A stretch of DNA of 64,000 nt, from contig CP075497.1 of NCBI GenBank assembly GCA_021613535.1, forward strand, positions 13,764,001-13,828,000, given 5' to 3'. How positions within the stretch are numbered: position 1 is the first letter of the stretch; each line of letters starts with the position of its first letter. The notes under the pieces are model-generated. The model searched no databases. It worked only from the letters and a program-made list of their open reading frames with translations, and was not told where the DNA came from. The translations under genes were made by a program, and so were the position numbers. Below are positions 49,930-58,134 of the stretch, piece by piece. The stretch is from Adineta vaga (Eukaryota > Animalia > Rotifera).

Positions 49930-52900
49930 AATATGAGGAAGAATAGAAATATCAGTTTCTGGTCCACTCTCATCCTCATCCTATGTGTAAAATGACAGAA
50001 TCTTTTAATGTCAAAGACTTCAATCATTTCCAAATTTCATTAAATGACTTGTATTTGATCCAACAATTAATCCATCAGATTTGCATTCGTTGTTTTCATC
50101 AAGATAATAACAACCAGATGTAAAGATTCTCAACTGATAATTAGATCTAAATTGTAATGATTCATTTGAAGTTAATTCTCGTAAACCAATAATTAATGTT
50201 TGATGATTTATTGTTTTTTGATTATCAATGAAATGAATGTGAGTTTTATTTGAAGGACAAAATAAATTCCATCCATCAATTTGATTTAATTGCGGAATTT
50301 GATCAAATTTATAAATAATTAAATAGGATAAATTCATATTTAATGATTGAAATTGATAATTGAGATGTTATATTAACAAAATGATAATGAAATGTTTGAT
50401 TATGAGGAGTAGAATTAAAGGATCATTGGGGGAATAGAATAATTGGGATCTTGTGGAATGATGAATCGAATTGAATGTTTAGTTGGGGTTTTGATGGAAA
50501 TTTCATTTCCATTTTGATCAGGAAAAGTTAAAGAAATCGTTCTATCACTGTTCGAAAAGAAATTATTGAATTGTTTGATAAAGATAAATTGAAATTCGAT
50601 GTAAAATAAATATCTACTCCTCCAATTTATTTTCTTTGTTTATTGATAAGTGATTGAATTGAGATAGTTTTCAATAATACAAATATTTCTAGAAATATCA
50701 ATCAATGTCATATTTTGACCAATATTTAATGATTTTGTAACTAAATCGATGATTTGATTAATTTCATTTGTGTAAGAATCAAAGGTCCAAAAAAAACATT
50801 TTTTCTAAAATCGTCTTAAACATTAAATACTCATAATAGGATGTCGGTGTGAGTTTGATAGAATCGATTTTTTAGAAAAAATTCGGTTTTCTCTTCGGAA
50901 AAATTAAGAAATAGTTAAGTCGTTTCTTCGTCTCACTTTTGAGATACGCAGAAAATACTTGTTTTCTGATTACAAAGAAATAAAATGATTTACTTAAATT
51001 TGACCAATCAGAATCTAAATCTGTATCATAATCATCTCGTATTTTTGTTGAACTATCAATATCTGATTTTAGTACATTTGTACGTTGTTGTAAAACTTGA
51101 TTAATACTCTATAATATTTATAAAAAGAGATGACAAAATAGAATTTATTTTAAATTACTTACAGTAAAAACATTAGCAGCACATTGAACATCTTCATAAG
51201 GAATTTTTGTTGAAAGAAAATGAAGAGTTTTCGGCAATCGACAACATTTATTTGAAACAATCGTCTATGTTAGAAAAATAAATTTCATAAAAGAATTTTT
51301 CGAATGAAAAGTTTGATTTTGTTTCAATGATGAAACGGAGATTTGTGTTTGGGGAATTTCACTTTTCATTGCTTTATCAAAATTTTCTCTATTAATTTCA
51401 TTTAATTCTTTCGAAATAGAATTAATAATCTGTTCAATAGAATTTTGATCTTTAGTTAGAGATAATTCGTTCAATAAATAATTTGTTTGTGTTGATAAAA
51501 CAGAAATCGATGATGAAATATTAAATTCATTAAATCACGAATTTGAACGAGAAGATTTAAATTTCCACGAGGAAATCGAACCGTAAAATTCATTGCACTG
51601 ATATTTGTTTCATATGAATTGATTTGAGAAAATAAAATCCATTGAATCTTTTTATTTAAAGAACATTTTCCATGACAGTAGGAATACAATGCAACTTGAG
51701 TTGTAGGATTTATTAAGTGATATTCAACATTTGGTAAAGAAAGTGTTGAAATAACACATCTAAATAAGAAAATGAAAGAGGATATTATTTTTTCAATTGT
51801 CAATAGAGAGGTTCATCGTGGTTAAAAATATGCCACGTCACAATGAAAGTTTTAGCGAATTCTGTTTTTTCAAGACTCCGAGCCATAGAAATCTAAGTTG
51901 TTACTACTATTTCAAGAAGAAGTCAAAGGGAAACGTATAGGTTAGGCATCGTCAGCACCTATCATAGGTTTCAGGTGCTGAAATGCCCGCACTTTTCTCC
52001 TTAGAAGAAGTTCATCAAGTCTCACACACTAGAATACATCATCATTGAAATTATGTGTGACTTTATAAGTTTAAAAGTACCGCTATCGACGCTATGAACA
52101 TCTGTGACTGTCAATGACTTACCCAGTAATAATCATTGATTTATTTAAATCTTTAATTTGTATAAGAACATAACCAATTGCATAAATTGAAGAATTTTGC
52201 CGATTATTCATTTGAATCATAAATTGATATGTTTCATCTAATTGAAGTGATTGACGAAAGATTTTTATTGAAGATTCTTTTGGATATTGCATTCCATTAT
52301 ATTCGAAATTAGTTTTATTTAATAAACATGATAAATCTGAGGAGTCATTTAATGATTGAGAATTTGGGATAATGAAATCTCCATGATGATCATAAACACC
52401 ATAAATTTGACAATAATATCTATAAATCCAATCCTTTATTTATAAATAAAACATACGGTTGAATTAAATGGATATCCATCAGGATCATTTGAATAATTTC
52501 CTGGATTTAAATAAAGATCTTGTTGATATCCAGAGGTAATCATTGATGTTCCTAATGGAACAAGATTTACTGTAATTCCTGTTGGATTTACTTGAATATA
52601 AACTGATTTTGAACAATTTAATTTAATAATTGATAAAATATAAAAATCACGATTTCGACGTATTTGAATTGGAGATAAGAACGTTGATTCTGGGATTAAT
52701 CGAATTTGAGGATATTGACATTTTGCTTTTATTCAAATATCAAATTAGAAAAATCACATTTTCAATTGAATGATGAAATTTTTACCTTGATTTTTAAAAG
52801 AAATTGTTAAGATTTGTTCTGTTGGCGAAGGAAAAGTTACTTGATCTATTATTTAAAAAGAGAAATAAACTTTCTTCATTCATTTGTTTTTACTTACGAC

Positions 52901-53560
52901 ATGAATCTTTTTCAAAAAGAAATTTTTGAGTTCGATGATTTCCAAAATCATTGACATACATATTTCTATCAACATCGAAACTAAGAACAGATGGATTATT
53001 TAATTGATGAGCTTGTGAACCTTCTCCATCACATCCAACTAAACATCGAAAACCATTTTGATCTGATCCAATTATACGATGATTTCCAAAATTCACAATA
53101 AAAAGATATTTATCAGCATCTAGAAAAATTTGAGTTGGCCCAACAAGTGTAATTGTAATATTAGAAGATGCATTTCCTGCTTTTGTTATTCCATTTAAAT
53201 TACCAAATTCAAATAATTGAATACGGTCATTTCGAAAATCTGCCACATATAAATCAAAATTATCGTCAACAAAGATTCCACGTGGATACGCAAATTGATT
53301 CGAAGCAGAACCTTGAGTACCATTTCCAGCAATAACTGTTGTATTTATTTCAACATTATTTAACCATCTTTTCACTACTTTATGTTGACTGAGAAGTGCA
53401 CAATATAAAGAATTCTTTTGATCAACAAAAAGACCAGAACAATATGATTTAACATTCATGACATTGATAAACTTGATCGTTCAATCCACTATTAATAAAA
53501 ATATCTCCAAGGTTTGTAACAAAGATCGACCATGGATTTGAAAAGTGTCCTGAAATAAAT
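49930..53560 (-). pseudogene. NHL-repeat + REJ/GPS polycystin-1-like (PKD1L/PKDREJ-like) pseudogene
   Basis: NHL repeats at 52890-53459 (PRGIFVDDNFDLYVADFRNDRIQLF), REJ-like pieces, and a GPS-like LRIFTSGCYYLDENNECKSDGLIVG; many frameshifts and deletions. Confidence 0.7.
51804..52106. mobile_element. hAT-like MITE with 8-bp TSD, intronic
   Basis: Imperfect TIRs TAGAGAGGTTCAT/ATGAACATCTGTG, flanked by ATTGTCAA (51796-51803) and ACTGTCAA (52107-52114). Confidence 0.7.
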
Positions 53561-54068: not shown

Positions 54069-54893
54069 TTATGTATTGCTTGCACTGATATATGGTATCG
54101 ATTCAAATTCTAATACACAACCAATATGTGATTGAGTATCAGCTACAATACGTCCATTTTCTTTATGGTATTCTATATTGCCTTTGGCAAGCGCACTGAT
54201 TAGTTTATCCATCGAATCGATACCGAACGTTAATTTGTATATACCTAATGAGTCAATATTTCTAACAGTCAATATGATTTGAAAATTTTTGAGATGAAGA
54301 ATGTAACGATTTGCTTCGGTGCCAACTAGTTTATCAATATCCATATCGAGCAGAAATACTTGAGCCGCACTGGGCGGATCAATTACGTTGATATGAAGTT
54401 GAGTCATAGCAGTGCAACCGTTCGGATGCATCTGCCATTCAGGACGCCAAACAAGCTCTGGATTTAAATGTTGACAATAACTGATACCAGTACCAGGAAC
54501 GGGAGTAGATTCCAAACGGGTTACACGAAATGCGGCATTTCCAATTAGGGCATCGTTTAAATTAACCGGACGTGACAAGGCTAATATCGGTATAGTAGAT
54601 AAACCACGTGCAGTGAGCGTAGTTTTCACTTCATCAACATCATGTGCTTTTATTGTCATAGTTATTAATCATGCAGGCAACTACTCCAGTCTCAGACGCT
54701 TTTCGTATGGCGTGTCCTCTGTATATCCACATAGTTCCAGATAATCAGTTTAGAAAACTATAGTATGATTGATCGTACCGACTGTATGACAGCCACGTGG
54801 AGTTATAATAAAACCCATACGTTGAAAATATGCTGCTACCTGATCAAGTCAATTCCGCGTATTGAGAATAATGTGATCAATGCGATTCATCAT
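54069..54893 (-). pseudogene. Bacterial-type glyoxalase-like (VOC, Glyoxalase_3) pseudogene
   Basis: One frame from ATG 54893/54890: MNRIDHIILNTRN*LDQVAAYFQRMGFIITPRGCHTVGTINHTIVF*TDYLELCG...E*LPA*L, continuing to CQHLNPELVWRPEWQMHPNG. Four in-frame stops, no introns. Confidence 0.8.
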
Positions 54894-56047
54894 AATTTAT
54901 TATTATCGAAATCTATAAAAAAATTCTTTACTTTTATTTATAGTTCAATACTTTCCTTGTCAGTCTACATACCGTATATGAAATACATTCGTGATATATA
55001 AACTATCTTTCAGTAATGATGAAGAAAAATAAGCACATGGTTAGGTAAAAAGTAGTATACGTGAAATTATTTTCTTATCTTGAAAATAACTGTCACTACT
55101 AACAAACACCATCTGACAACAGATATAAGCCAACCATCTAAAGTTACTGAATCATGTATGAACAATAAAACATGAGAGCTAATAGTATCTTCTGCCTAAT
55201 AGACAATGATCATGGCATTGAATTTTTTAGCAACATCATGATTGCATTCATACCTTTTATGTTAATAATAGATTGTCAAGAACGACACAGTCAGTATTGT
55301 TGTTGATACATAGAAGAAAAGTGACGTTTACAAGCACCTTTTTCAGTCCTCCACAAACGTAATACTATTGTTTTATAACAGATAAGAAAGATTCTGTTAC
55401 ATCTTGAGAAGTAGATGTATGGGTGTTAGTATTATATTGTTCGTAGATCGCACCCAAACCTTTGTTAGAACTAGAAACTGTTAAATGATAGTACGCATAT
55501 ATAAAATACAAACTATATGCTACATGTTTTACTAGTATCAATTTACTCGTGTATTCTATGATAATCAAAACTGATCTTTTACAAAATTCCCGTGCTTACT
55601 GGACATTGCATGGTACATGGATGTGGATGATGGTGAGGATACAAAAACAACCACATTCACTCTCACCCTCGATTATGTGTTTCTTTCAAATGTTTATCTT
55701 CTAGAATATTTATTTAATAATTATGATAAAAAATTGTTAATTTTTGTTTATTATATTATTCGTATTAAAGACCACGTTTTTCTTGTTCTGTTTTTAAAAA
55801 CTTCTCTTATTTGTCTTCATGTATCATTTCTTTTCCGTGAATAATTTCATTGCAAGTTCGACGTGTTTCTATGTTCATCTTTTGCATATTTTTTCATTTT
55901 CTTTTCGTAGTATTTCAATGATTTATTCGTTTTTTCCCTCCATTCTGTAAGAATAATATGCTGCATCAAAGTTAAAACTTTCATAAGATGTTTTATTCAT
56001 TACAAATCTTTTTTTAACATCAGAAAATCATTCCGAGCATAGGAAAA

Positions 56048-56497
56048 TCAATCAGATTGTTGCCAACATTTTCTTTCTTCAATACCAAATTTACCATTTA
56101 ATTTAGCTTTAGTGTAAAAATCTTTGATAGCCCAATCTCTTGATTCGCTTCGACTTTTCTTTGTTGCTTTACCCCAGATCGTTTCTGATATTGATGGACA
56201 TCGAAGTTTTGTAACCCATACCCATTCCCATCCTGAGAAACGTCCTTTTTGATAAAAATCACATTTAGCGTTACATACCAACATCGACTGGTTTTTACCC
56301 CAGTTTCTATTTTCATTATAACTATTACAGAATGCATCAAGACATTGTTGAGGATTCTCGTGAGAAAGAGTATCCGTGCAAGATCTCAATAGATGACCTG
56401 GATGAAGTTTTGAATTCAAAGTAAAATGTTGACTGGAACTAGTGTAGAACAGAATAAGAGTTAAATAAAAGCCAAACCAAATCGTCGAACTCTGCAT
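56048..56497 (-). CDS. Secreted anti-lipopolysaccharide factor (ALF)-like protein
   Basis: Signal peptide, then a C-x20-C-P loop (CDFYQKGRFSGWEWVWVTKLRCP) followed by IWGKATKKSRS...AIKDFYTKAKLNG...EE...W. A (TA)n TATA-like run lies just upstream. Alternative ATG at 56521. Confidence 0.75.
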   Translation of the reverse strand: MQSSTIWFGFYLTLILFYTSSSQHFTLNSKLHPGHLLRSCTDTLSHENPQQCLDAFCNSYNENRNWGKNQSMLVCNAKCDFYQKGRFSGWEWVWVTKLRCPSISETIWGKATKKSRSESRDWAIKDFYTKAKLNGKFGIEERKCWQQSD

Positions 56498-56674
56498 GTT
56501 TAACGATTGTAAAGAAATCATTTGTATATATATATATATATATACTCATATTCAAAACAAACATGATCGATCGTATTATTTTCAATGATTTAGATAAGAA
56601 TGGAGACGAAATAAGATATTTATTAAGAAAAGTACTTCCTATTTTATATACAATTATTTGATTAAAGAACAAAT

Positions 56675-58134
56675 TTAAAAATTGTTAGTTTCAACTAAAT
56701 CATATTGAGTTTGTATAAAAGGTTGAGAACTTGGTTGGAGTGGACTTGAAATAGGAATTTCTTCAAATGAATAATTACGAATTCTCATTTGAGTTCTTCT
56801 ACAATTAAATCGATAAATAATTATTATAAAACCAATAGATATAACTATAATTGAAATAATTATTATCATTTTTAACATATTTGAATCAATTTTATTATTC
56901 AACATTACAACTTTTGTCGTTTCTTCCATAGTTACTGTTGTTGATATATATGTAATTTCAGGAGTTAGATTGATCTCCAAATCTAAAGAACATAATGATC
57001 ATTGAATTGAACGAAATAAAAGTAAGAATTTCTAAATATACCTTCTGTATTACAATAATTAGTTTCACAACAATTGATACGACCTTGAAAAGTAATATCA
57101 CGATATGAAACAATACCAAAAGGTTGATTTTGGCAGTTTTCAACAAATGTTAATATAGTAAAAGATGGATAAGTAATATTTCGATTATTATCATATCCTG
57201 TCAAACCAATAATTGTCTGAAAATAATTATATTTTAAAGAAAAGAATCTTTGAAATAACGTACAGCACATGATTCTGAAGGATTTTATGATTTAAATTTA
57301 TAAATATTATCTTCGATTGAATCATTAATACGTGAATCATAAACATAACAATTCAGACCATTTCCATGCGATAAAAATTGTTGATTACAATTCCAAGAAT
57401 AACAACATGATGAATTAATTGTTATCACAGCTTCAATTCGACTGTGTGGTTCGGAATCTAAACCAGGTGAACATTTCTTCTGATAAGATTTATATACGTC
57501 AACTTCAGTTTGGGGTTGGATCGACTAAAATTGAATTATTGATAACAAAAAAAGAGATATTTATTTGAATTTACTAACCGAACATGATTCAATAGCGCTA
57601 CTACGATATGCAATACGAATTTTATCATCACATTTATTATCAGGTGATGAACAATGACCAACAAGACATGTTAAATTAGTAAAAGCAGGTAATGGAGGTG
57701 AAGGAAGAGAATTACAAAGATTATCTTTACAACAATATTGAGATGAAGAACTTTGACGAGTATTGGAAAGTATCATGTCACGAGTTATCAGACTTTCTGG
57801 ACTTATACTTATCTAAATTATATATAAAATAATAAATTTAATAATTGTCTTACATACTTACTGAACATGAATATAAAGTTTCATGACCAGATTTAAAAAG
57901 ATGTTCTGTATTATTATTATTTAATCTTGATGAAAATAAAATTCCACATTCTGGTCCCTCATTACACGTATAGCATTGAAGGATTCGACCTTGATAGATG
58001 CCTCTTTCAATAGTCATTTTGATTGCTTGAAAAAAAAATACATATCGAAATAATTGATTTGTGAAATGATATTACTTATTGTGAACTATTATTAAATAAA
58101 TTATATGTATTCTTATTGTAATTAAATATGACAT
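56675..58134 (-). CDS. Type I membrane protein with about three Ly6/uPAR (three-finger)-like domains, multi-exon
   Basis: Domain starts CYTC, LTCLVG and LNCYV; domain ends CCKDNLCN, CCYSWNCN and CCETNYCN; then a Thr-rich stalk and TM IIIISIIVISIGFIIIIY. Confidence 0.7.

Follow-up and report, generated by a model that had tools for sequence, protein, structure and literature searches.

The 64-kb window analysed here, a stretch of the Adineta vaga genome (100.8 Mb, six contigs), carries on its minus strand an intronless gene (56048-56497; ATG at 56497, TGA at 56048-56050) whose 149-aa product is an ALF-like member of PF11630, the family of anti-lipopolysaccharide factors (ALFs) and scygonadins, and not a canonical ALF. 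With slightly better than even confidence, and judging from its sequence and a structural model, we read the product as an expressed, secreted defence protein with the ALF fold, belonging to a subfamily expanded in bdelloids and having three predicted disulfides; compared with the shrimp protein ALFPm3, it would probably bind canonical lipid A less tightly, or with a shifted affinity.

Gene structure and transcription

The gene is defined by its open reading frame, the PF11630 match, RNA-like contigs and the starts of its orthologues, and the reading frame, the contigs and the Adineta steineri orthologue all give a single exon. As orthologues begin at the Met at 56497, an upstream Met at 56521 was discarded as the start. 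Contigs from three RNA-like runs, which are separate studies (RNA status is a guess for two, and the third is unlabelled with transcript-like coverage), cover 55979-56497, 56042-56487 and 56006-56495; all are unspliced, with no joint, and no contig in the three runs lies upstream of 56550. If these runs are RNA, they show that the gene is transcribed. A short 3' UTR (55979-56047, minus strand) is marked by AATAAA at 55992-55997 and by one RNA-like contig stopping at 55979. Just downstream, the three runs also cover a second, single-copy piece (55351-55936, strand not given) with no convincing ORF, which is either a long 3' UTR isoform or a separate non-coding RNA.

The closest A. steineri protein, CAF1098980.1 (145 aa), is encoded by a stand-alone, single-exon gene, and since the DNA upstream of that gene matches 56710-58104 of the window, it is the syntenic orthologue; dN/dS for the pair is roughly 0.47. 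From the contigs, the AATAAA signal, the syntenic orthologue and the dN/dS, this is therefore a real chromosomal gene that is probably expressed and evolves under moderate constraint. Contamination was rejected on the grounds of synteny with A. steineri and with a metagenomic contig, family loci spread over all six chromosomes, and a host-like GC3 of 0.25. The upstream neighbour (56675-58104, minus strand) has several exons, some of them Cys-rich with CC..N.CN and the last one transmembrane, and keeps its place beside the ALF gene both in A. steineri and in the metagenomic contig; its Cys-rich exons resemble Ly6/uPAR by eye, and the one exon scanned gave no Pfam match.

A public model, UJR38897.1 (664 aa), is identical to the 149-aa ORF over its first 134 residues, which confirms A. 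vaga as the host where the preliminary description had supposed a rotifer. According to this model the ALF segment is merely exon 1 of a multidomain protein, with a GT donor near 56095 spliced into a glyoxalase-like frame at 54836. However, the RNA-like contigs run across both donor and stop with no joint, 54548-55163 is covered by no RNA-like contig in the three runs, the glyoxalase frame holds four in-frame stops, and the A. steineri orthologue stands alone with another gene downstream. The unspliced contigs over the stop and the stand-alone syntenic orthologue make the fused model very likely wrong, and we give next to no credence to the ALF segment being a first exon. The glyoxalase frame belongs to an intronless Glyoxalase_3-like gene (54069-54899, minus strand) with all four stops in its first third, and is a pseudogene, possibly of horizontal origin. 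An NHL-repeat ORF (52890-53459, minus strand), a member of a multi-copy bdelloid family, has likewise been absorbed into UJR38897.1.

Sequence features and relationship to ALFs

Residues 69-145 (56063-56293, minus strand) match PF11630 (Anti-LPS-SCYG, formerly DUF3254) with 39.3 bits, E 7.8e-10, against a curated gathering threshold of 25 bits, and comprise the predicted four-stranded sheet and two C-terminal helices. When compared as a single sequence, ALFPm3 (2JOB) matched the protein weakly (E 0.73), whereas a profile of the paralogues matched 2JOB at E 8e-10; at the level of sequence, kinship with ALF is settled by this profile. The ALF-like homology proposed in the preliminary description, for which a Pfam HMM search had been named as a check, is thus borne out by the family model, by the paralogue profile and by the predicted fold. 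Its further particulars were recovered as well: exactly 20 residues lie between C79 and C100, the loop they form, described as Trp-rich, holds three Trp, and the motif CP..I.G.A...SRS downstream appears a single time across the window's six frames, where a bare CX20C pattern occurs 20 times.

A probable signal peptide spans residues 1-22 (56432-56497, minus strand), with a hydropathy peak of 1.9 at residues 7-17 followed by small residues. On this hydropathy profile, cleavage after S22 and before Q23 is plausible, and the length falls within the 22-28 residues of the strict ALF definition. The predicted mature protein has a mass of about 14.9 kDa, a pI of 9.1 and a net charge of +7.

The protein contains seven cysteines (C40, C52, C57, C75, C79, C100 and C144); the Cys-containing N-terminal segment of the preliminary description corresponds to C40, C52 and C57, to which C75 and C144 are additions. 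In a set of 78 homologues, C75 and C144 go together in 25/25 carriers, with one exception, a signal that comes from a single subfamily, is phylogenetically confounded and therefore does not amount to independent covariation. C52 was never seen without an upstream Cys in the same set, and C57 is private, being present in 1/78. The pattern points to disulfides C40-C52, C75-C144 and C79-C100, with C57 probably unpaired. Across the 78 homologues a core of W66, K84, C79, C100, G109, S115 and R116 is kept.

Predicted structure

An AlphaFold2 model built with 54 homologues (pLDDT 84.4, pTM 0.75) places helices at residues 38-44, 49-63, 116-133 and 139-147, and strands at 70-74, 77-88, 91-99 and 108-114. 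The predicted layout corresponds to the three helices and four strands of ALF with a short extra N-terminal helix; this helix and the following helix alpha1 (56309-56386, minus strand) carry the putative C40-C52 bridge as well as C57, and the putative C75-C144 bridge lies within the PF11630 match.

[quoted passage not shown] With Foldseek, an earlier 10-sequence model matched 2JOB at E 3e-4, the sole match at E <= 1e-3. A viral fold library gave no match at E <= 1e-3. With VIA-align, the 54-sequence model put 2JOB at the head of 48,161 chains (Z 8.1, rmsd 3.2, 80 residues, 25% identity), and dsRBDs of MLE/DHX9 came within 1 Z unit of it (model ma52782d0f4a6). The fold search hence agrees with ALF, yet is not decisive on its own, and as the dsRBD match lies so close, the fold alone leaves the function unfixed. 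Structural classifications place ALF itself in a dsRBD-like group.

The same result raises the idea that the protein binds extracellular dsRNA or another nucleic acid through its dsRBD-like core, since dsRBD1 of DHX9/MLE superposes at Z 7.8-8.4 (rmsd 2.5-2.7 A over about 70 residues), tied with 2JOB, and the helix is preceded by a basic stretch, G-x-A-x-x-K-K-S-R, at about the position of the dsRBD lysine motif. We consider this very unlikely: identity to the dsRBDs is only 7-19%, compared to 25% for 2JOB, the Pfam dsrm family (PF00035) gave no match at E up to 1, a Z near 8 can reflect a common arrangement, and no link between ALFs and dsRNA was found in the literature searched.

Hairpin charge and the LPS site

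The hairpin of ALFs corresponds to C79-C100 (56198-56263, minus strand) and to strands 77-88 and 91-99 of the model. It contains four basic and two acidic residues, giving a net charge of +2, which is also the median of its subfamily, while ALFPm3 has +6 and 21 classical ALFs have a median of +4 (range 0-8). The hairpins of the A. vaga paralogues range from -2 to +5, a spread resembling that of shrimp groups A-G. For ALFPm3, seven charged residues have been given for LPS binding (PMC3701609). Their equivalents, mapped via the weak single-sequence alignment to ALFPm3 (E 0.73), are Q70, S71, D80, K84, V95, K97 and W108, so that two of seven are kept and one is reversed in charge to Asp; many classical ALFs also lack some of these residues. 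Given this and the low net charge, the cationic/aromatic hairpin of the preliminary description stands as regards the CX20C spacing and the three Trp, but "cationic" was an overstatement.

An alternative is that the protein is nevertheless fully active, LPS-neutralizing and bactericidal like ALFPm3, with its basic residues rearranged. A molecular dynamics simulation of ALFPm3 found Lys39 and Tyr49 to be key and binding to be mainly hydrophobic (PMC10131219); Lys39 and Arg52 of ALFPm3 correspond to K84 and K97, and Tyr49 is replaced by W94, so that both key positions may be regarded as kept. Together with the intact CX20C and the cationic mature protein (pI 9.1, net +7), these features speak for full activity. 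On the other hand, five of the seven LPS-site residues are gone, one of them reversed to Asp, the hairpin carries a net charge of only +2 as in the rest of its subfamily, and a comparable loss cripples the Group D ALFs, which keep two of the seven residues, bind 20-fold more weakly and are nearly inactive (PMC3701609). Full ALFPm3-like activity therefore seems unlikely to us, and from the two retained site residues and the charge of +2 a modest binder of microbial lipids, or one of altered specificity, or an opsonin, is judged more likely than a potent killer of the ALFPm3 type.

Family members and distribution

The A. vaga genome holds 13 family loci, distributed over all six chromosomes, which include secreted forms with four and six Cys and a type II membrane form (L019/P0016); three of the copies are broken. 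L019 and L033 are spliced and were treated exon by exon. In the paralogue L010 (1315-1884; G000 C6:13.54 Mb), a Thr-rich stalk and a C-terminal hydrophobic tail resemble a GPI-anchored protein, and similar forms are found in other species (P0029, P0030 and P0128). L030, L032, L034 and L020 are broken copies; several of their stops, TGA or TAG, fall where relatives carry Trp; the metagenomic orthologue has two such stops, read through as Trp by the gene caller.

A word search with the single sequence found one relative only, whereas searching 1.84 billion representatives with a profile returned 197 matches. Named members outside the arthropods come from A. steineri, Rotaria spp., Brachionus calyciflorus and the nematode Romanomermis culicivorax, and when the Rotaria, Brachionus and Romanomermis members were re-scanned, all three lay above the Pfam cut-off; the B. 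calyciflorus member bears the automatic UniRef name 'Anti-lipopolysaccharide factor'. Many other relatives stem from unlabelled eukaryote assemblies, and the contigs of the environmental relatives look animal (ASC channels, Cys-loop receptors, EF1A). Among environmental eukaryotes, P0053, P0058, P0068, P0101, P0126 and P0147 carry Cys-less tandem PF11630 repeats, up to five, several with an N-terminal transmembrane helix and one GC-rich (GC3 0.94). P0113 is a Cys-less single domain of 84 aa with no signal peptide, and P0040, also environmental, fuses PF11630 to a ricin-type beta-trefoil lectin domain.

The membrane-anchored, lectin-fused and Cys-less tandem relatives suggest a general binding module, and with the loss of LPS-site residues they could indicate that the ALF fold has been co-opted for a non-immune, secreted role, e.g. 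as a lipid carrier, as a component of egg, cuticle or mucus, in digestion of bacterial food or in membrane binding linked to desiccation. An A. vaga PF11630 gene, apparently another paralogue, moreover changes in spaceflight, which is no infection setting (PMC12220480). Conversely, the characterized PF11630 members are all defence peptides, and the multigene expansion, the several broken copies, the near-telomeric site and the rather quick pace of protein change (dN/dS about 0.5) would fit immune effectors. A non-immune role thus appears to be a minor possibility beside the secreted defence protein.

Phylogeny and origin

An unrooted tree was built from 83 sequences and 117 columns, in which most environmental homologues were without taxon and classical ALFs were labelled by sequence likeness, not by taxon look-up (e.g. 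P0117, matching 2JOB at E 2e-42; P0075 we take to be the Limulus ALF). One side of a 99/99 branch was made up of 21 classical-type ALFs and one unlabelled marine-animal sequence; it included no named sequence from a rotifer or nematode. The protein grouped with its A. steineri orthologue (100/98) inside a subfamily with six or seven Cys. A single clade of A. vaga paralogues was rejected (AU p 3e-51), and these lineages are therefore older than the divergence of the species sampled. A sister relationship between the query subfamily and the classical ALFs was compatible with the AU test (p 0.16).

The best fit to these data is an old eukaryotic or protostome family with patchy retention and a rotifer expansion preceding the split of the Adineta species, of which the classical arthropod ALFs would be one branch; an ancient transfer between eukaryotes is possible. 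A separate question from that of function is whether an arthropod or a microbe passed the family to rotifers horizontally, for which the preliminary description had suggested a phylogeny. Bdelloids do contain many foreign genes, often near telomeres (PMC11258130), and this gene is intronless, is some 73 kb away from the end of the chromosome and adjoins the bacterial-type glyoxalase pseudogene; the family distribution is patchy and the AU test tolerates the sister grouping just mentioned. Nevertheless, pattern-based scans of limited sensitivity confirmed no relative in 185,579 prokaryote genomes and 2.9 million viral contigs, every match of checkable origin was eukaryotic, the classical clade holds no rotifer sequences, the family is common to bdelloids and monogononts, and the GC3 of 0.25 is like that of the host. 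As the classical ALFs keep to a 99/99 branch of their own and the scans of prokaryotes and viruses were blank, a recent transfer is unsupported, and we consider a horizontal origin improbable.

Proposed function and significance

As a secreted defence protein, the product would be exported by its signal peptide to the gut lumen, the body surface or the body fluid, where the cationic mature protein may be attracted to anionic microbial surfaces. By analogy with a model of ALFPm3 (PMC10131219), phosphate groups could be touched by K84 and K97, and acyl chains may lodge in the Trp-rich hairpin and in the cleft at the back of the sheet (W92, W94). The two putative disulfides besides that of the hairpin would pin the N-terminal helix and the last helix onto the core. 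A published study of fungal infection yielded nothing on the PF11630 family, and no induction by infection could be traced to this gene.

A broader and more tentative reading is that PF11630 is an old group of dsRBD-like eukaryotic binders of microbial surfaces, richest in rotifers, in which ALFs form one branch and the triple-disulfide, Trp-rich protein may serve a ligand other than canonical lipid A as part of a gene-encoded antimicrobial arsenal of bdelloids. The diversity sampled for it comprises, in rotifers, secreted forms with two, four and six or seven Cys as well as membrane-tethered and lectin-fused forms, and beyond rotifers members from a mermithid nematode and Cys-less tandem forms from unidentified eukaryotes.

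ALFs have been stated to be exclusive to marine chelicerates and crustaceans (PMC6213531, PMC3701609), and a review from 2025 presents them as peptides of arthropods (PMC11767717). The literature searched, outside which most subscription journals lay, gave no description of rotifer or nematode ALFs; one A. vaga PF11630 gene is an uncommented row in a table of differential expression in spaceflight and another appears in the supplement (PMC12220480). The suggestion of a little-characterized family outside the arthropods thus held: the family is multigene in A. vaga, with no member described in searchable papers. An expanded, expressed rotifer family together with members from one nematode widens the stated range of ALFs and puts the origin of an intensively studied antimicrobial, endotoxin-binding family in question again. 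Bdelloids, whose defence in the face of asexuality is an open question, gain candidate gene-encoded effectors, and natural variants with extra disulfides, Trp-rich hairpins of low charge or tethers offer a probe of the residues behind LPS binding. The surprise is tempered by the fold being known, by the automatic labelling of rotifer members in databases and by the predicted nature of the activity.

Comparison with known systems

Classical ALFs, such as ALFPm3 (Penmon ALF-B1, 2JOB) and LALF, are found in horseshoe crabs and malacostracans and share with the A. vaga protein the PF11630 domain, a signal peptide, CX20C, the G-x-A...SR...A..DF..KA tail, the equivalents of Lys39 and Arg52 and, as far as predicted, three helices on a four-stranded sheet. 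Under the strict definition, by which relatives with three and four Cys are not 'authentic' ALFs (PMC6213531), the 20-residue hairpin between C79 and C100 and the predicted helix/sheet layout agree. In contrast, the A. vaga protein has seven cysteines where the mature classical peptides have two, a mass of about 14.9 kDa compared to 10.7-12.2 kDa, two of the seven charged residues of the LPS site (Group B type, PMC3701609), W-x-W in place of L-x-Y in the hairpin, an extra N-terminal helix with no counterpart, and a single exon instead of the three exons and two introns of shrimp ALFs; it also falls outside the crustacean and xiphosuran branch (99/99), in a spiralian host. Since it departs from the strict definition in Cys number, size, LPS site, gene structure and clade, it is filed as ALF-like.

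Other relatives come close in single traits. Shrimp Group D (Litsty ALF-D1) likewise has two of the seven LPS-site residues (PMC3701609), but is anionic, with a pI up to 6.2 and two Cys, whereas the A. vaga protein is cationic overall with seven. ALF-related peptides with three or four Cys (MjALF-E1) and the scygonadins resemble it in combining PF11630 with extra Cys or an altered hairpin, and such peptides fall outside the authentic ALF clade (PMC6213531); scygonadins, however, are anionic and have CX17C, unlike the CX20C and pI of 9.1 found here. The beta-beta-beta-alpha core finally superposes on dsRBD1 of DHX9/MLE with Z about 8, yet unlike a dsRBD the protein is predicted to be secreted and disulfide-bonded, and it has no sequence match to dsrm.
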